Shown: positions 33,000 to 42,383 of the stretch, one piece after another
How the letters are laid out: each line of letters opens with the position of its first letter
Numbering within the stretch: the stretch's first letter is position 1
Source of the DNA: Oikopleura dioica
Lineage: Eukaryota; Animalia; Chordata
Assembly (NCBI GenBank): GCA_907165135.1
Contig: OU015567.1
Span: 11,036,001-11,100,000 of the forward strand
Reading direction: 5' to 3'
Length of the DNA stretch: 64,000 nucleotides
The notes under the pieces: model-generated
What the model was told of the DNA's origin: nothing
The model's database searches: none
The model's input: only the letters and a program-made list of their open reading frames with translations
Position numbers and translations under genes: made by a program

Positions 33000-34255
33000 T
33001 TCACTTTCTCATTTTCATCACGCCTCTGTTCAAAAGAAAAGAGATGCTTCGAAAAAATTTTCCGAAAACATTTTCAGCCTCAAGTAACTCCTTTATCTGT
33101 CCGTAAGTCTTCCAAACCAACAAAAAAGAACGAGAACTTAGTGATCTTGACAAGAACGAGCGCTGTCTGAATAGATGCCAGTCTTCTAAAAATGACTGTA
33201 TCAATGTTTGCGATGAAAACGACTATACTTGTTCATCTCGTTGTGAAGCTGAGTTTTTTGACTGTCGTTATGCATGTCCTTGTGAAGAAGGTTGCCCAGT
33301 TGGTTGTGTTGAATGTTCTAATGCAGTCTGCAATGAGAGAGAGTTCCTTTTTATTCTCAACTACTGGAGAGCAAATGAAGATGTTGGATATCTTTTGAAT
33401 CTGAAAACGGAAGAAATAAGCTACGCGACGGTCAACTACAACTCTCTCAGCATTGATGATTCGTGTTACGCATTCCTCGGAGACAAGCACTTTCTTCTAA
33501 GAGGATCAATGAATCCTCATCAGATTCTTACCTTTGAAAGTGAGACCTGTAGCTTGAGAGAACACGGTGTCTTGGGTACATCGCATGTCGATGGAATGTA
33601 CGGATCCTGCGCGGCTTACAACGAGATCGCGTACTTGTGTTTTGATGAAAATGGCGTCGATCAACGAGGATGCCAAGGATTCGATGGAAACGATCAGATT
33701 CGCGTCAAGCAAAAAAGTACTCATGCGCACGATTGGTCCTCAATGGCCGTCTACGATGGCAGAATGTGGGTTGTTGGTGGATGTGAATCCAGTGGTTGCT
33801 ACAATCACGTCGAATTTTTTGACGGAAACTCGTGGCAACTATCAGTACCTCACCCAGACTCAACGATGTACGGTCATTTAGTACTTGGGGATGAAAATGG
33901 ACTCTATACAATCAGTGACGTGGCAAATTATGGGGAGATCGGCTTTCGATACGGCGTGCGAATATAAGACGGGCACAGCTGGGCTGATTCGGGCGAGCTT
34001 TCTCAAGCACAAAAGTTTTCTTACGGTGTAAACGCCGGTGTGATTGTTAATGGCTACGCGTATATCGGGAAAGAGTAAGTTATCTTTTTGAGAAGGTATA
34101 TTTTCAATATTTCTAGTGTTCTCGACAAAGCAAAACTTGAACCAAGCGAATTTTCCGCCTATAGTCTCGGAAATGATCCTGATGATACAACTTTATGGCT
34201 GTATTATTCGCCAATGATAACTGTTGATGGTCCGATCTGTTCTAGACCGATTTGA
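33000..34255 (+). CDS. Cys-rich domain plus kelch-like beta-propeller protein, probably secreted (start uncertain)
   Basis: CLNRCQSSKNDCINVCDENDYTCSSRCEAEFFDCRYACPCEEGCPVGCVECSNAVC, then MAVYDGRMWVVGGC...VEFFDGNSW kelch-like blades. Stop TGA 34253-34255 overlaps AATAAA. Confidence 0.7.
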
Positions 34256-34279
34256 ATAAAGTTGTTTAATTTGAATTGT

Positions 34280-34295
34280 GGCCCTTAAAAGGGCC
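34280..34295 (-). other. Replication-dependent histone mRNA 3' stem-loop (H2A)
   Basis: Minus strand GGCCCTTTTAAGGGCC, 25 nt after the H2A stop. Confidence 0.95.
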
Positions 34296-34320
34296 GGTTT
34301 TGCAAGAATCAGTAAGAGGC

Positions 34321-34710
34321 TTACTCCTTCTTGGCGGTCTTCTTGGGAAGAAGAACGGCTTGGATGTTGGGGATGACACCACCCTGAGCGATGGTGACAC
34401 CTCCGAGGAGCTGGGTGAGCTCTTCATCGTTTCGGATGGCGAGCTGAAGATGTCGAGGAATGATTCTCGACTTCTTGTTGTCTCGGGCGGCGTTGCCAGC
34501 GAGCTCAACGACCTCAGCGGTGAGGTACTCGAGGACAGCGGCCATGTAGACGGGAGCGCCAGCACCGACTCGGTCAGCCCAGTTGCCTCGTCGAAGCATT
34601 CGGTGGACTCGTCCAACAGGGAACTGGAGTCCAGCCCGGGCGGATCGGGTCTGGCTCTTGACGCCCTTTGCTCGGCCCTTGGCAGCGGTCTTCTTTCCTT
34701 TTCCGGACAT
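34321..34710 (-). CDS. H2A: Histone H2A, intronless
   Basis: [15 protein letters not shown]...[23 protein letters not shown]...VLLPKK. Confidence 0.98.
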
Positions 34711-34867
34711 TTTCGTTTTTTTGACTTTTCGAGTTGGTGGTTGCTCAAAGTGTGAGGCAATCGGGGCCCGGGGCTGTTTATATAGGCACATCGGGGAAGC
34801 ATGTGAGTATCTAGAAACTCGATGGAAAAAAGAAACTCGAAAACAAGTTGGCGTTCGATATTTTTCT

Positions 34868-35073
34868 GGGGTGTCCTTCCTGGTAAAATCCTTCCTGGTA
34901 AAAATCCTTCCTGGTAAAAATCCCTTCCTGGTAAAAGAAAAAGTTTTACCAGGAAGGAATTTTACCAGGAAGGGATTTTTACCAGGAAGGGATTTTTAAA
35001 TTGTGAAAATGTTCAAATTTGAAAAATAAGCTTATCATCTAAAAAAAATATCTGCTTTACCCCCCTCTCAGCA
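34868..35073 (+). repeat. Left TIR with an internal palindrome (4 direct + 3 inverted CCTTCCTGGTAAAA units)
   Basis: Read directly. It is the reverse complement of 39798-40007. Confidence 0.93.
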
Positions 35074-36198
35074 CCTTTTTTATAGAAAAAAGTTTTCTTT
35101 CATAATTTCAAATTTTGGAATTTGCGCGCCATTTTGCGAATAATCGTGACTCATTCTTCCCACGCTCACGAATTAATCAACTTATTTTCAAATCATTTTT
35201 GACTGAGAATTGTCTGAGAAAAGAAGAAAGAAGATAACTGAGAATTTAATAATTTGATTAATTTATTCATTTTTACTTCAGTTTTTCTGCCCACTTTTTT
35301 TTCCATATAAGCGATTCTATCCATCACTGCTTGAATGAAATCGTCCTGTTTGTTCCCAACCAGTGTGTTTATTCTTGACAATTGAAGAGTCATCGCTTTT
35401 ATCAGCCGCTAATCGTGCGTTGTATCTGTTATTTATGCGTTCTTTTTTTAATCTTAATTGGGATCCTTATTGTCGGGTCCCATTTTTTTATTTCAAGACA
35501 GAAAAGTCGACGTTTCTTCCTCTTCTTGGTTTGTGTCGGTGAAACTGCCATCAACGATCTTCATTTGCTTTTTCAAGAGAAAATACTGACTCCGGGAACA
35601 GGACATCAGCGCGTACGCTTACCAGGTAAAAAATCGGTTCAAACCAAAAGTAAACATTTTTTTTAAAGCTAACGGTAAAAATGGACCAGCGAAACGAACT
35701 TCTGACAGAACTTGGCGTTGAGGACATTGGATTAGTGGCGGAAGAAGTCAGAGCAGGTAATTCGCTTGAGCCAGGGCTTTTTGAAACGGAGAGAAATCAG
35801 CAAATAATTCTAAAGAGCGTAAAAACATTTTACGCTGGTCATTATCAACCTCTCAGCACCACCAAGCAATAACACAGAGCGGTAAGCATGTCCTTCAATC
35901 GTTGTTTAATACCCTCTTCTACCGTAAATAACAAACTCTAGTGAACGAACGTACATGATGTTTATCGAAGCGCTGACGATGAATTTGGAACGAGTTCTGT
36001 TAATAAGAGGCAGTTGGAAAGAAGTAATCACAGCATACGGCTAGAAGCAAGAAGAAGCCTACTTTGATCTCGTTTAAAAACAAAGGCAAGTTGCATTTTA
36101 AAAATCACGAAATAACAATTTTATACTGCTGGAGGATATCTATTGTATATTTGATATAAAATGAAGACAGTCGAAAAAAGTAAAAATGGAATAAGTTT

Positions 36199-38875
36199 TC
36201 ATAGATTAATCAAAACATTTTCATTGAGTATGATTTCTGCAATGCGATTTCGTAAATTTTTAATTGGCTCGTAGTCTTCTTCTTTGATTTCTGGTTGTTC
36301 CGCCACCGCAAGTCTCACCAGAGCAATCAAATAGTAAGGAACTAAGTCATACCATTTTTCAACAGTAGGAATAGCCTTAATATCAATATTAATCTTAATT
36401 TCTTCAAGATTATCAATCAAGTAAGAGTTATTTCAATCATTCCTAATGGACAGTATGTAGAATTATGTCGAACATAATTCTTCAGAAGATAGTTTGAAAA
36501 GCGGCGCCATTCACTATCAATTTTCTCCAAAGCACAAATTTCTTCTTCCACAAGCTCAATGAACATCAAGTTGACGGAACAATTATATAAGGGAATGTAA
36601 GGTATCGCGGTGCAAAGTTCCCGAATTGTTTTTGCGACGGGCTTGTTCCAATCATCAAGTTTATACTCGTACAAAGCATTTCGTTGTATTGCTTTATAGT
36701 TTTAATAAATTTGACAATATATATACTTATCACCACGCAATCGACAAAAATTGTACACTTCGGGTATAGGGGTTAAGAAAATGAATCTAAATTAAAACGT
36801 CCATTGGCCCAAGTGAAAGCTGCAGTAAAGCTGATTAACTTGACCATTGAAGGAATCAGCAATAGCTTTTATCCATGACGATTCATAATCCAAGCTAAGC
36901 GATTTCAAATTCGTCAGGCCCGCTTTCCAACGAACTCCATCAATCAACAAACAGTAGTCCTCACTCTTTTTGCTCGGAATAAAGGCAGCAAGCCGGATGG
37001 CCGAAAAGTTCTTTGATTGATTCATATTGAACTTTCCGGCCTGAACGAAAAACACAAGCTGAAAGCTTTTAATTGGTTTCAATTTGATAAACATTATTCT
37101 AGGTATTTTACGAGCTGGAGCGACGAAAACTCGGTTTAGAAAAACTTCAACGAGACTTTGCTGATGCAATAGAAAGGTAGATGCATTAAATTGAAACCTT
37201 TCCTTTTTCCTCCACCAAGTTCTTCTTTCGCGACTTTCACGGCCGAAAAATTGCCGTCCAGCCCCAACCCCAAAGCGATACCCATATTCGTCCAGTCATT
37301 ATTCGTGGCATAGATTTCAAACTTCTCGAAAGCCTCGTGCTCGAACCCTGCCCCCTTGCAACGATATTGCTCGTTTCCGATACACTCCAGGATCACAAAG
37401 GGATCTTTGTTCAAATCATCTTTGATTTTCATTCGGTAACGCTTCATAGGATGACATATTTATTTAGAGAAGAAGACTCTTCGATCGAAAAACAAGCTCA
37501 AATCCTCAACTACGAAAGTTTATCCGACAAGCGATGAAATGCGAAGAAAAAAGTAAGAAGCATTAAAGGTAAATATACAAAATAAGGAAGAAATCCTATT
37601 CAAAAGAGCCGCTTGCGGCTTTTGAGCAATATAGATAGTGATTATGGCAATCTATTTCGCGTAACTTGAAAGAATTTCAGTGAAAAACCTAATGCATAAA
37701 ATGAAATATTCGTCCTTTCCGATAAAATATTTGCAAGCCTTTTTTGTGCTCTGGAATTAAGAGATTTCGCTTTGTCACTGCTGATGATGATTGATTTATC
37801 TTTGAGGAGCTCTGCTCGTAGTTGTTTTGCATTCGGACGGATAGGCATGTGTTGCATCTGTTGCGCTCGCCAAAGATCATAGATTCTGTCGAGTTCTTTG
37901 AATTCGACTTCACAGTTTTCAAGTGAGCAGACGCTAATTTCCAAGAGTAGAGCTTTTTTCTCCGCATCAGTTCGTTTGCGGTTTAATCGCGGCATTTTCT
38001 TTGTCGAGGAATGAGCATCAAACGTCTGAGCAATCGTAAAATTTGATAAATCGAAGAAAGATTCTTTCTTTGGGTCCGTAATTCCAAGGAAAAGTTTCAT
38101 TCTTTTGGTGCACTTTCTGTTTTTCGAATGGCAATAAACGGTTATGTAGAATTTCCCAACTGTTATGCTTTAATTTGAATTTCTTTTATACTTACTGACT
38201 TTTTAGAAAACTCTCCACTTAACAAGATGCCCATCACAAGTGGAACAACTTCACGTTTCAATTCGATTCCAAAGTTCGGATACTACAGCAGTTGGGCCGC
38301 AGCCGGAGAAATTAAGGAAGAGCTATAAAATGATGCAACCTGTCAGGCCGTCTGATGATTTTCTCGTGCCAAGGCAGTATCCTCACATAATGGTAAGAGA
38401 ACATTATGTAATGGCCTGATTAAAGCTTATTTAACACACTACAGACATTTCCAAACATGGTGCAAAAGAGAGAATCGAAATATCTCGACCCTAACACCTT
38501 CAAAACCACTCCACCAATTTATGTCCGAATTATTTGAAACCTATTTATGCTACTGCTCATTCTGAGTATTCAAAATTAAAGCATTCCTTTTTTGTCAAAT
38601 TTGACGTTCTTTTGAAAATCGCGCTTCAGGGTAAAATACATAAAGACGCCAAGATTTTCCTTCGTTGTAAATCGAGCTGCGCCGCTTTCCATAAGAACAG
38701 ATATTAGTCTTGGATTTTCAGCAGACGAGTTCAATATTGCGTCAAAATCGGTCCTTGAAAGCGGGGCTTTAGGTTTGATAAGGAGATCAGAATCTTCCAT
38801 TTTCCACACACGCGATTCTTTTTCTTTCTTTTTGTCATTTTTCCCGTCGTTTTCACTATTTTTAGTCGTATCCAT
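36199..38875 (-). pseudogene. MULE transposase, fragmented (introns and/or decay)
   Basis: LGLDGNFSAVK (D1-like), FQLVF...AAFIPSKKSEDY, LSLDYESSWIKAIADSF...YCSFHLGQ (D2 plus the CxxH hallmark). The catalytic Glu was not located. Confidence 0.72.
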
Positions 38876-38927
38876 GATGCAACTGTTACAATATTGGCTT
38901 TACGATGTGATAATAACATCATTCTAG

Positions 38928-39287
38928 AGAGCGAATGGGGATGACTACTACGCCGGACTTTCAACAGCTTCCATTCTTCCAGAAAGACTCAAGGACTCTT
39001 AAGAAGCAAAATCGAGACTCGTCAATGTTGTCAAGGTACTCAATCAACGAAAAACCATCATTTTAACCGATTCAGGCACAAATCGAGAAGAGAAAGAACT
39101 TCCACAGACGACGCATGCACGACGAAGACAAGGACATTACTTACATCAGCGAGCAAAACAGAAAATTCAACGAGAAAATTGACCGTAGCTACTCCAAGGT
39201 AAGGCTTTTCTTGAGACGAAGTTTTATCATCATTTTTAGTACACACAAGAGATCAAGCAAAACTTGGAGCGTGGAACTGCCATATAA
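38928..39287 (+). pseudogene. SYF2: Captured 3' fragment of splicing factor SYF2, with two introns and a premature stop
   Basis: Spliced: ERMGDDYYAGLSTASILPERLKDS*EAKSRLVNVVK|AQIEKRKNFHRRRMHDEDKDITYISEQNRKFNEKIDRSYSK|YTQEIKQNLERGTAI*. GT-AG introns at 39036-39075 and 39199-39239. Confidence 0.9.
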
Positions 39288-39797
39288 AAACACCAAAATG
39301 AGCACTGTCAGCTCTTCAGTGTGCGTCCTCAACAAGAAAGAAACGAAGCACAAGGATCTCTGCGCCGTTCGTAAGACTGAAAGTACCGACGTGATTTTCC
39401 ACACTTTCATGTTCGAATTCGACGCTATCAATGTAAGAGAACAAATTGTCTTCCATGGTTTTGAACAAAAATTAAGAGCAGCTCTCTCGACAGGGATGCA
39501 GCGTCTGGCATCTGTTTCTTCGACTCGGACTCAAGAGACAAATTCGAAGATTTGTAAAAATAAGCCAGTGAAAACCTCGACAAAGTCATCCAGAAGTTCA
39601 TCATTAGCAGCGACAATCTTACCAACATCAACAATACAAGCCGCCAACTCAACCATCACATCAGTAAAATTATTGCAATTGATGCTTTCAATTTGTTATT
39701 AAAGCATTAATCAACTTGAAAATTACAAAAGTACTGTTTTATTTGTTGCAAAGAGTGCACAGATAATGCAAAGAGAAGTAATTGAATTCAAAATTTA

Positions 39798-40007
39798 TGC
39801 TGAGGGGGGGTGAATCAGATATTTTTTTAAGACAATAAGCTTATTTTTCATTTTCGAGCATTTTCACAATTTAAAATTCCCTTCCTGGTAAAATCCCTTC
39901 CTGGTAAAATTCCCTTCCTGGTAAAACTTTTTTCTTTTACCAGGAAGGGATTTTTACCAGGAAGGGATTTTTACCAGGAAGGGATTTTTACCAGGAAGGG
40001 ACATCCC
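39798..40007 (-). repeat. Right TIR with an internal palindrome (3 + 4 units)
   Basis: Reverse complement of the left TIR, ending GGACATCCC. Confidence 0.93.
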
Positions 40008-40163
40008 ATTTTTTCTAGGGCTGTTATTGACATTTTTCTCTGCGTAAACAATTTGTTTGCATGGTTTCTAGAGCAAGGGTAGGTTCTCGCCTGAGGCGAT
40101 ATAAACGCCGAGGGCAACTCTCGAGGGCGCACTTTGATTTTTCCAAAATCAGAACAGCCAACG

Positions 40164-40508
40164 ATGGCTAGACTCGTGAACAAAAAACCAACAAAGAAGG
40201 AAAAACACAAGCCACGAAGAGCTCGTCGGGAAAGCTTCAGGATCTACATCTATAAACTTTTGAAGCAAACACACCCAGACATGAACATCTCCGTCAAAAC
40301 TATGTCTTGTCTGAACAGTTTTGTAATGGACATCTTTGAGCGCCTCGCGAATGAATCTTCACGACTTGCGAAAATGAGCAATCGCAGTACACTTGCTGTG
40401 GCCGACATTCAAACTTCCATGCAACTTGTTGTTGGCGGCGAGCTTGCAAAACACGGCAATATGCAAGGATATCGGGCAACTAGCAAGTACATGGCAAGCA
40501 AAAAGTAA
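40164..40508 (+). CDS. H2B: Divergent histone H2B variant, intronless
   Basis: RRESFRIYIYKLLKQTHPD..IS..TMSCLNSFVMDIFERLANESSRLA...GELAKH. Many substitutions relative to canonical H2B. Confidence 0.94.
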   Translation: MARLVNKKPTKKEKHKPRRARRESFRIYIYKLLKQTHPDMNISVKTMSCLNSFVMDIFERLANESSRLAKMSNRSTLAVADIQTSMQLVVGGELAKHGNMQGYRATSKYMASKK

Positions 40509-40569
40509 ACTTGGAGTGACCTACCGACGAACCTCACCTAACTGCCAATAACTAACGGTCTGCCAAAAC

Positions 40570-40585
40570 GGCCCTTTTTAGGGCC
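40570..40585 (+). other. Histone mRNA 3' stem-loop (H2B)
   Basis: GGCCCTTTTTAGGGCC, ~60 nt after the stop. Confidence 0.95.
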
Positions 40586-40811
40586 AACAATAATAACCTT
40601 TTTGACAATAGAACGAATTCGATCTCCTCAGTTTATTCGGAAATTATCAGTAGCAGAAATATTTTTTGGCCAGGCGAGAGGAAAATAGGTATCGAAGGGA
40701 CTGTTTTTTCATAGATTTTATCATAAAAATGGAGAATTTGAAATCTCGAGAGTAGATTTTTTTCAATTATGGGCACATTTAGCGCCCTGAGAGAATTATG
40801 AGCGAAAGACT

Positions 40812-42383
40812 TCAGACAGAAATAAATACATAGGATTTGTAGTTGTTGATGTTTCGCTTGAGGATGTCGACACAAGGGCCGAGGACCCGTTCAAAACGGG
40901 ATCTATCCAATCGAACACATTTCAGTGTCGACTTGGCTGTCACCGTTGCGGCGCGCGGTCGATCTGACAGTAATGCCACTTCGCCGAAATAATCGCTAAA
41001 ATATTCAATGAACAATTATCATTTATAACCGCCGTTATTTCAGACAGCGTGCTTCTGTTTAAATGCAGACGGTTACTACTGTAATGTCTCACCTAGGCCC
41101 AAGTGTTCCGACGAGCTTTTCCTCTTCATCAAGAGATACATGCTGTGTAACATCTGCCTGTCCTTGAATGATCATGTAGAATTTGTTGCCTTGGTCGCCT
41201 TGCTTAACAACTTCTTCTCCTGCTTGAAAGATCACTTCTTCCAGAGCATCCGCGATCGTCATTCTTTCCCACTCATCGAGATTCTGTAGGATTTTCACTG
41301 AAGCAATATAATAATTACCGCAAAAATGCCTTTTCTCACCTTTCAATAGAAATTCTTGATACAAAGCCCGTTTCTTCAAATGCGAATTCATCAATATTCT
41401 TCGGTAGCTTTCGCTAAAATTGACACATTTTCACCATTTTCAACAAGGAACTGCACTTACCGATCAATAGCCCAAAGTTTACACTTCGTTATTGCTCTTA
41501 CTGTCGCTGCTCGTGTTCTTCCGTGAATAAGTGCCAACTCACCAAAGGTTCCATTTTCTCCTATGTTTGTAACGTGCTGGCCATTGACGAGAACTTCTAC
41601 CTCTCCGATGTCAATTACGTAGAAATTGTCTCCGATATCGCCCTGGTTCATTATGATATCCCCCTCTAAAAGTCAATAACATTAATTTTTAATAATGAAG
41701 CAAGATCGTACCTGAAACAATTTTCTCAAACATGGCGTCAAAAATGGCACTTCGCTGCTCTTCATCACAAGATCGGAGTAAGGCATTGTTTTGGAATGCT
41801 TTTTCTAGGGCACACATCGTTTTGTAGTCTTTCGGAATCACTTTTTTCTGGTAATTGGCCACCTAAATATTTATAATTTGAGTTGATAGGGCGAGTTTTT
41901 TCACCTCTTCTTCTGTATAAACTTCTGCGGAAATCGCCCCTCTTCTTTTCTGCGGGGTTCTACTCTCTCTCATCTGGCAGGTCTCCATTTCCTCCGTCTG
42001 AGATGCACCTGATGAATATTCTTGAAAAAAATGAAATCAACAATGACTCTTACTTGAGTCGGCTGACGTCGTTGAGTCCATGGAGTTGGAACGATTGAGC
42101 GAGATTTGCTCCAGTCGTCCAAAATAGTCTCTCAAGTATGCAAGTGGGCGCTGTGGCTGCTTCGAGCATAACTCAGCGATTGCATCCTAAAAGCATTCGA
42201 TAAATCCGCGTAAAACGTTTTAAGTAGTATATATATTACTTGTTGAACAATAGTTAACTAAGCCTTGAATCAATAATTTTTTTCTCAAATTATTTTCAAT
42301 TTAAAACGTACCTTCACGATGGTTTGAATATTGAATTCATCTATATACGCAGACGGATCAGCTGTTTCCTGATTTCTGTTCAT
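40812..42383 (-). CDS. PRKAR1A: cAMP-dependent protein kinase type I regulatory subunit
   Basis: D/D domain ([29 protein letters not shown]), pseudosubstrate [10 protein letters not shown], two CNB domains ([16 protein letters not shown]; [17 protein letters not shown]), C-terminus [17 protein letters not shown]. Confidence 0.95.

Follow-up and report, generated by a model that had tools for sequence, protein, structure and literature searches.

A putative Mutator-superfamily element with host DNA cargo at the centre of a divergent histone H2A/H2B promoter in Oikopleura dioica

Introduction

What separates the two genes of a divergent histone H2A/H2B pair, and what would this separation mean for their expression? 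The question is posed by a stretch of 64,000 nucleotides of Oikopleura dioica DNA (contig OU015567.1, positions 11,036,001 to 11,100,000 of the forward strand), which we call the window and to which all positions refer. In the histone clusters of this species the arrangement of H2A and H2B around a divergent promoter is the reported norm (PMC3156773). The original prediction held that a Pack-MULE had inserted at the midpoint of such a promoter, and it named beforehand the search for the empty site as one check.

Results

The histone gene pair and its promoter

The two genes, their 3' ends and the two halves of their promoter were located as follows:

34321..34710, minus strand: histone H2A gene, 129 aa, intact (Pfam Histone, E 3.5e-16, and Histone_H2A_C)
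40164..40508, plus strand: histone H2B gene, divergent, 114 aa, intact (Pfam Histone, E 4.4e-14)
34255..34300, minus strand: H2A 3' histone stem–loop (Rfam RF00032, 35 bits, E 2.2e-7)
40565..40611, plus strand: H2B 3' histone stem–loop (Rfam RF00032, 29.1 bits, E 3.5e-5)
34711..34858, minus strand: H2A promoter half with GTTTCTAGA (34810-34818), TATA box ATATAAAC (34776-34783) and CACTTTGA (34745-34752)
40017..40163, plus strand: H2B promoter half with GTTTCTAGA (40064-40072), TATA box ATATAAAC (40099-40106) and CACTTTGA (40130-40137)

Both genes are intronless, lie head to head with a short common promoter and are followed by 3' stem–loops, which are the features of a replication-dependent divergent pair; the gathering score of RF00032 is 34, so that the H2A stem–loop lies above and the H2B stem–loop below it. 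The reading frames, the TATA-like boxes at 34776-34783 (minus strand) and 40099-40106 (plus strand) and the stem–loops had all been predicted to be intact, and the Pfam and RF00032 matches agree with this for the reading frames and the stem–loops. The H2A protein has a short tail and Ala13, consistent with H2A.1 as reported in PMC3156773. An exact-sequence lookup of the H2B protein returned no record.

The motifs GTTTCTAGA, TATA and CACTTTGA form mirror-image modules with equal spacing on the H2A and the H2B side, and in 5000 shuffles there was no case of three or more common 8-mers at one offset between the two promoter halves. The insertion point lies in the spacer between the modules and touches neither of them. 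From the edge of the inserted DNA to the ATG the distance is 157 nt on the H2A side and 156 nt on the H2B side, exactly as claimed for an insertion at the promoter midpoint. When the element and one target-site duplication are removed, 157+156-9 = 304 nt remain, where a head-to-head promoter of ~305 bp had been anticipated; the two genes are the same distance apart in the empty allele L001.

Ends of the element

The inserted DNA comprises positions 34868-40007 (5140 bp), begins with GGGGTGTCC and ends with GGGACATCCC. It is bounded by these features:

34859..34867, no strand: left target-site duplication, TATTTTTCT
34868..35073, plus strand: left terminal inverted repeat, 206 nt, four forward and three reverse CCTTCCTGGTAAAA units
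39798..40007, minus strand: right terminal inverted repeat, 210 nt, three forward and four reverse CCTTCCTGGTAAAA units
40008..40016, no strand: right target-site duplication, ATTTTTTCT

The two copies of the 9-bp target-site duplication (TSD) differ by two mismatches or by a 1-nt indel in a T-run, and the empty alleles contain the target once (GATTTTTTTTCTAGGG). The terminal inverted repeats (TIRs), which had been described as identical, are in fact 91% alike (193 of 212 columns of a gapped alignment). Each consists of seven 16–17-bp CCTTCCTGGTAAAA units; the window contains the 14-mer CCTTCCTGGTAAAA in 14 places, all within the TIR arms, against a chance expectation of 0.02 copies. As single-stranded DNA the left arm would fold into a hairpin of -47 kcal/mol (z -10.9). 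Rfam miRNA matches on the TIRs were rejected as they fall far under the gathering scores and reflect the generic hairpin similarity of palindromic arms. The TIRs have the length of those of a MULE, which measure tens to hundreds of bp, and the TSD is within the 8–11 bp range known for this group (PMC6446971).

Outside the element itself, a BLAST search of the window returned neither a second copy nor a parental locus, and the element is apparently single-copy. A tRNA search found none, and in JGI metagenome contigs a pattern of two TIR units side by side had 0 matches.

Empty and filled alleles

The empty site was found in two metagenome assemblies and in three genomic runs. Contigs L001 and L002, which stem from two independent ocean-metagenome assemblies, match both flanks of the element at 97% identity and have these flanks joined; both assemblies contain the empty form only, with a single clean target copy and no footprint. 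Empty-site joints are also present in the genomic DNA runs X1, X3 and X6. In addition, the element interior is represented in run X1 by seven unitigs that show 0 differences; their depth is about half that of fully shared (homozygous-depth) pieces. As X1 thus has both the empty joint and the 0-difference interior, we conclude that the insertion is polymorphic. The transposase-bearing interior has a depth of 0 in X3 and X6, X3 having the right 1.3 kb of the element without transposase, and TIR-like sequence is several-fold commoner than the interior in all three runs. The flank unitigs of X1 and X3 break off precisely at the insertion site, which is what a branch would produce. None of the unitigs in the short-read sets spans a TIR and none of the listed contigs covers the whole stretch, and because of the former the short-read contigs do not directly place the X1 copy at exactly this site; the left-flank unitig of X1 and the window have different letters at 34794, 34806 and 34825.

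The filled and empty alleles also differ within the genes. Compared with L001 and L002 the H2A gene has four differences, all synonymous (34636, 34561, 34504 and 34495), and an unchanged protein, while two of the five differences in H2B (40214, 40244, 40307, 40406 and 40501) are amino-acid changes (I27M and K113R).

Transposase blocks

On the minus strand of the element a series of open frames was found:

37645..38169, minus strand: frame B, 175 codons, an open frame only and a possible N-terminal transposase exon
37139..37459, minus strand: transposase block C, first Asp motif LDGNFS (FDGNFS in the L003 counterpart)
36795..37295, minus strand: transposase block D, MULE catalytic core, second Asp SLDYES and C-x2-H motif CSFH
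36420-36701, minus strand: transposase block E, collinear with the DDWNKP block of metagenome contig L003 (tblastx)
36202-36432, minus strand: block F, open frame adjoining E

The 125-aa reading frame of block D matches PF10551 with an E value of 0.005 and 17.6 bits, for which the cut-off is 27.6. Its homologues P0002 and P0003, with 36–37% identity, match the same family at about 1e-5 (25.8 and 26.9 bits); these two were the only real homologues found for the transposase block among 1.8 billion representative proteins, and phmmer with this block gave no match to any other family. In the ESM Atlas the first match of block D has a score of 0.94 and 193 features in common with it, and the ten best matches are all MULE. 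Blocks C (tblastx sum E 3.6e-24), D and E have collinear counterparts in contig L003, which encodes a homologue of 30–38% amino-acid identity with gaps in similar places. Taken together, the PF10551 scores, the Atlas matches and the visible motifs favour membership of the element in the Mutator superfamily, but none of the matches reached a curated threshold.

C can be joined to D by a canonical 47-nt GT-AG intron (37145-37099), the sole attractive join in an enumeration of introns that otherwise yielded too many solutions. The blocks occupy three frames with stops between them, an intron between D and E would have to be of the non-canonical G[GC]-AG type, and the connection of E with F is ambiguous; for these reasons the transposase may be broken. 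Frame B is found in X1 alone among the DNA runs, has nothing that Pfam recognises and is not recognised in the Atlas either (best score 0.68). In Pfam the other open frames gave nothing credible, and a Ulp1 protease was not detected in the element. Searching metagenome contigs with the back-translated transposase (alignment A2) produced 176 pattern matches, 0 of which were confirmed. None of the RNA runs searched with the element interior is listed as containing it; run X13, whose lineage is only 90–95% alike, has 0 reads on 36167-38168.

Captured host DNA

At least four pieces of the element are derived from the host:

35597..36075, no strand: fragment (a), about 97% identity to one single-copy contig each in X6 (6.7 kb) and X3 (2.2 kb)
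38212..38398, no strand: fragment (b), about 90% like an X6 contig
38928..39287, plus strand: 3' end of SYF2, a captured genomic copy (Pfam SYF2, E 1.7e-7)
39309..39565, no strand: fragment (d), 89% like a 5.6-kb X6 contig

The SYF2 piece keeps three exons (38928-39035, 39076-39198 and 39240-39287) with their introns of 40 and 41 nt, and has an in-frame premature TAA stop at 39000-39002; at 39000 the letter of the parental copy is G. SYF2 exons are the only part of the element that RNA run X13 covers, and they are covered with parental letters. As the SYF2 RNA reads carry fixed differences at 39149 and 39155 and have the 41-nt GT-AG intron spliced out, we assign them to the parental gene. The three other pieces gave no credible Pfam match, and they match single-copy contigs in runs that do not contain the transposase interior. 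For fragment (a), the matching X6 and X3 contigs have 283 additional letters at 35832/35833; fragment (d) is present in run X3 as one divergent and one 0-difference copy.

The original designation as Pack-MULE holds insofar as host fragments, SYF2 and three more, lie between MULE TIRs, but blocks C, D and E are homologous to a transposase. Because of these coding blocks we call the element a cargo-carrying Mutator-like element and not a strict Pack-MULE.

Discussion

As an event this is a young transposon insertion of the ordinary kind, and the findings make it very probable that a young, segregating cut-and-paste element of the Mutator superfamily, equipped with a transposase and host cargo, inserted at the centre of the 304-nt H2A/H2B promoter. 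We suggest that the element had picked up pieces of host DNA before insertion, among them the SYF2 3' end that is disabled by a stop. Its minus strand would encode a very divergent MULE transposase, the blocks of which need short introns for their joining. The element would then have inserted into the spacer, precisely midway along the divergent promoter; the T-rich centre between the mirror-image modules is probably nucleosome-free, and Mutator elements appear to prefer such sites.

The same locus could be read in other ways. The element might be a dead non-autonomous relic, in effect a Pack-MULE, whose blocks are pseudogene pieces and which owed its movement to another MULE of the genome acting in trans. 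We take this seriously without favouring it. The three frames with intervening stops, the two joins that are non-canonical or ambiguous, the want of an RNA run listed with the interior, and the several-fold excess of TIR-like sequence over interior in three DNA runs, together with the right 1.3 kb without transposase in X3, all point to a relic. On the other hand, the open frames are long and collinear with the independent homologue L003 at 30–38% identity, with gaps similarly placed, the catalytic motifs are kept and a canonical 47-nt intron can link C to D. O. dioica is reported to use non-canonical introns, which would also count against decay of the gene.

As cut-and-paste elements do excise and the empty alleles are widespread, one could also propose that the filled state is ancestral and that the empty alleles arose by excision. 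This is very improbable: the empty alleles have one clean target copy and no footprint, the interior has a depth of 0 in X3 and X6 and of about half in X1, both metagenome assemblies contain the empty form only, and the undivided promoter corresponds to the layout reported as the norm for these histone clusters (PMC3156773). We give hardly any weight to an assembly artefact that placed an unrelated repeat between the histone genes. Long palindromic TIRs are difficult to assemble and the whole stretch is not crossed by any listed contig, but the boundaries match the empty-site junction to the base, with a 9-bp target duplication, the interior is supported by independent 0-difference unitigs, and the X1 and X3 flank unitigs terminate exactly at the insertion point.

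Returning to the young segregating insertion, its effect on the histone genes can be predicted from the layout of the locus. Each gene retains its own GTTTCTAGA/TATA/CACTTTGA module, reading frame and stem–loop, and for this reason both are expected to stay active, at their present distance of 5.4 kb. A loss of co-regulation, if any, would be quantitative, and mild rather than dramatic, since the mirrored module of each gene is complete and undisturbed; self-contained half-promoters of this kind predict a modest phenotype. A far-reaching version would be an active transposase-bearing element that homes to the nucleosome-free centres of divergent promoters, with TIRs that give outward promoter, enhancer or insulator input and alter the H2A/H2B stoichiometry, which we regard as unlikely. 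Since both alleles, the filled and the empty one, are segregating, heterozygotes provide an internally controlled test of whether the contiguity of a divergent histone promoter matters for co-regulation, and the allele-specific SNPs in H2A (four) and H2B (five) allow the two alleles to be distinguished.

Several known systems share features with this element. Maize Mutator (Mu/MuDR) has TIRs of about 215 bp, compared with about 210 bp here, and likewise a 9-bp TSD, and its insertions, like the one described here, fall in open chromatin and in the 5' regions of genes (PMC2774946). Its transposase combines a MULE DDE domain and a C-x2-H motif, a combination that the putative transposase here appears to share. 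In contrast to Mutator, the host here is an animal (a tunicate), the transposase is very divergent and its Pfam match does not reach the gathering score, each TIR consists of seven 16–17-bp units in a palindromic 4+3 arrangement, and host DNA lies alongside the transposase. Plant Pack-MULEs and the ULP1-protease KI-MULEs similarly contain several unrelated host fragments per element, as DNA-level copies with introns inside MULE ends, and insert near gene 5' ends, whereas classical Pack-MULEs are without the transposase-like blocks found here. Tan et al. report that 100 animal reference genomes yielded no Pack-MULE (PMC8277862). Among animal elements, Foldback (FB4) and the Ssk-FB4 Pack-TIR of Drosophila also have long TIRs of short tandem units, a 9–10-bp TSD and captured host sequence, and segregate in populations (PMC8277862); this likeness is one of described features, and unlike FB4, with arms of about 700 bp, the element described here has a MULE-like transposase within it. 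Few MULEs have been reported in chordates (PMC6446971), and the element described here would add to them a highly divergent lineage that carries pieces of host genes.

An insertion polymorphism between H2A and H2B

The histone genes H2A and H2B are separated by an element of 5140 bp (34868–40007), which is flanked by two copies of its target.

Histone genes and target copies flanking the element
34255–34300: H2A 3′ stem–loop (Rfam RF00032, 35 bits, above the gathering score)
34321–34710, minus strand: intronless histone H2A (Pfam)
34859–34867: left flanking target copy, TATTTTTCT
40008–40016: right flanking target copy, ATTTTTTCT
40164–40508, plus strand: divergent histone H2B (Pfam)
40565–40611: H2B 3′ stem–loop (Rfam RF00032, 29.1 bits, E 3.5e-5, below the gathering score)

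The distances of 157 nt to the H2A ATG and 156 nt to the H2B ATG given in the original prediction are exact. It had also proposed that removal of the element and one target-site duplication (TSD) would restore a head-to-head promoter of ∼305 bp, with the empty site as the check, and such alleles are found in two metagenome contigs and three genomic runs. The contigs (L001 and L002), which come from independent marine metagenome assemblies and were retrieved via an exact-protein look-up of H2A, are collinear with both flanks at 97% identity and join them as ...CGATTTTTTTTCTAGGG... with one target copy and without a footprint, giving an ATG-to-ATG spacing of 304 nt (157+156−9). Compared with these empty alleles, H2A has four differences, all synonymous, and H2B has five, two of which are conservative amino-acid replacements (I27M and K113R). 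The H2B at 40164–40508 is far from canonical H2B and its H2A partner is canonical-looking; divergent, stage-specific H2B variants are reported from O. dioica (PMC3156773). Introns of ∼40 nt and the characters of H2A are consistent with this species. The neighbor gene at 40812–41651 (minus strand) has cyclic-nucleotide-binding domains, resembles a PKA regulatory subunit and contains very short introns; it keeps its position in both contigs.

Logan contigs of the genomic runs X1, X3, and X6 were aligned to the intergenic interval 34711–40163 only. All three contain the empty-site joint, skipping ∼5148 nt (depth 141 in X1, 17 in X3, and 86.5 over two contigs in X6). X1 in addition has seven unitigs that match the element interior without a difference (depth 74–100), and X3 and X6 have depth 0 over the transposase-bearing interior (36167–36712, 36895–37076, 37259–37440, and 37805–38168). 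Therefore, the insertion is polymorphic; it is apparently single-copy. In X1 either the insertion is heterozygous or the sample is pooled: the interior depth is about half that of the fully shared pieces (177–224), but two haplotype-specific parental contigs are also near 100. As the repetitive terminal inverted repeats (TIRs) cannot be crossed by any unitig, we infer the flank-to-TIR junction in X1 from flank unitigs that stop exactly at the insertion point; the left-flank unitig and the window disagree at three positions.

Ends and coding capacity of the element

The inverted-repeat ends, of 206 and 210 nt, are not identical as had been assumed but share 91% identity in a gapped alignment. 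Each arm consists of seven units of 16–17 bp containing CCTTCCTGGTAAAA, a motif with 14 copies in the window, all within the TIR arms (chance expectation 0.02). Because four units run forward and three in reverse, an arm folds into a strong hairpin (−47 kcal/mol, z −10.9); miRNA-like Rfam matches on the TIRs were dismissed as hairpin artefacts. BLAST of the element against the remainder of the window found no second copy.

The minus strand of the element carries long open frames. Frame D (36795–37295) gives a weak match to the Pfam MULE profile (PF10551; E 0.005, 125-aa ORF), below the curated threshold. A phmmer search through all 1.84 billion representative proteins yielded no more than two true relatives (P0002 and P0003), which are metagenome fragments of 36–37% identity and each match the same region of PF10551 at ∼1e-5. 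The third match, P0004, was rejected, being a repetitive protein that aligns to another part of the query and has no MULE domain. In a protein-language-model search with frame D (score 0.94, 193 shared features), all ten best matches were MULE clusters. Three coding blocks of the element have collinear counterparts on L003, the contig carrying P0002 (tblastx sum E 3.6e-24).

Blocks collinear with L003
Frame C: LDGNFS/FDGNFS
Frame D: QLV...SLDYES...CSFH
Frame E: DDWNKP

L003 is a related element of another marine eukaryote. Its positions 1–1062 (JGI metagenome) code for a MULE transposase of 30–38% identity in separate blocks, and one block gap resembles a GT-AG intron of ∼40 nt. This relative aside, the transposase family is nearly absent among the 1.8 billion representative proteins, and metagenome scans with the transposase and with the TIR found nothing. 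In the element the blocks are spread over three frames: C and D can be joined by a canonical 47-nt GT-AG intron, between D and E the intron would have to be of the G[GC]-AG type, and the joining of E to F is ambiguous.

Three stretches (36739–36774, 37644–37690, and 38422–38520) have summed contig depths up to 3300 versus ∼90 in all three genomic runs, and loose contig ends on both sides suggest embedded fragments of high-copy repeats. One of them falls in the gap between blocks D and E.

Captured host sequences

Host-derived pieces of the element
35597–36075: cargo (a)
38212–38398: cargo (b)
38928–39287, plus strand: 3′ end of SYF2 in three exon pieces (Pfam E 1.7e-7)
39309–39565: cargo (d)

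The SYF2 piece keeps two introns of 40 and 41 nt and was thus captured at the DNA level. It has an in-frame TAA at 39000–39002, where the parental copy has G in all three genomic runs. RNA reads of X13, a run from a lineage 90–95% alike, cover only the SYF2 exons of the element interval; the parental letters are fixed in them at 39149 and 39155, the 41-nt GT-AG intron has been spliced out, and at both ends they continue into unlike sequence. They derive from the parental SYF2 and not from the element. The RNA-run search listed no run with the element interior.

Cargo (a), (b), and (d) match long single-copy contigs in transposase-free runs, and Pfam gave no match naming their source genes; Pfam and Atlas searches with the remaining open frames gave no lead. 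In X1, X3, and X6, the parental locus of (a), which is single-copy, is longer by 283 letters exactly at 35832/35833; the element copy may have undergone a deletion or lack an intron, or the parent may have gained an insertion.

Promoter architecture and expected effect of the insertion

Short bidirectional promoters are described as co-regulating the histone clusters of O. dioica (PMC3156773). Three motifs recur in both promoter halves when each is read toward its gene; their spacing is identical and the offset is 8 nt throughout.

Shared promoter motifs
−108 (H2A) and −100 (H2B): GTTTCTAGA
−73 (H2A) and −65 (H2B): ATATAAAC
−42 (H2A) and −34 (H2B): CACTTTGA

None of 5000 shuffles gave three shared 8-mers at a single offset (maximum one), and the empty alleles keep all three motifs. 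They form mirror-image modules at 34745–34818 and 40064–40137 (GTTTCTAGA-35 nt-ATATAAAC-31 nt-CACTTTGA); CACTTTGA, ∼31 nt past the TATA box, may mark the transcription start. The insertion lies at −149 to −157 in the spacer between the modules and interrupts neither. In agreement with the original prediction, both genes keep intact open reading frames, TATA-like boxes, and stem–loops, the H2B stem–loop being below the gathering score. Each histone gene would thus still be driven by its own module, and if the 5.1-kb separation or the TIRs next to the genes have an effect, it would be a quantitative one. Mutator elements preferentially insert near gene 5′ ends where chromatin is open (PMC2774946), and such a preference could plausibly explain the central insertion position. 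The locus is of particular value as it already provides the pair of alleles needed to test whether histone co-regulation depends on promoter contiguity.

Relation to known Mutator elements

Taken together, transposase homology, the 9-bp TSD and the ∼210-bp TIRs favor assignment of the element to the Mutator superfamily, with the Pfam MULE match lying below the curated threshold. The term Pack-MULE used originally holds insofar as host-gene cargo (SYF2) is present, but not in the strict non-autonomous sense; because of its transposase-like blocks the element is rather a cargo-carrying MULE.

X3, labelled as an organism other than X1, contains the right-hand 1.3 kb (38476–39810) with 0–3 differences at single-copy depth and lacks 35075–35438 and 36167–38168, and the TIR sequence is several-fold over-represented in all runs. 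Thus, shorter relatives of the element probably exist. The X3 form may have arisen by a deletion that removed the transposase and would then be a true Pack-MULE; it may occupy this same site, since an X3 flank unitig stops at 34863.

We conclude that the element is a new, very divergent MULE and its insertion an ordinary young transposon polymorphism. MULEs are rare among chordates, and a survey of 100 animal reference genomes revealed no Pack-MULE, although Drosophila Ssk-FB4 is regarded as one (PMC6446971; PMC8277862, respectively). The TSD is within the 8–11 bp range of MULEs (PMC6446971), and the ends resemble those of maize Mu, which has ∼215-bp TIRs and likewise a 9-bp TSD (PMC2774946).
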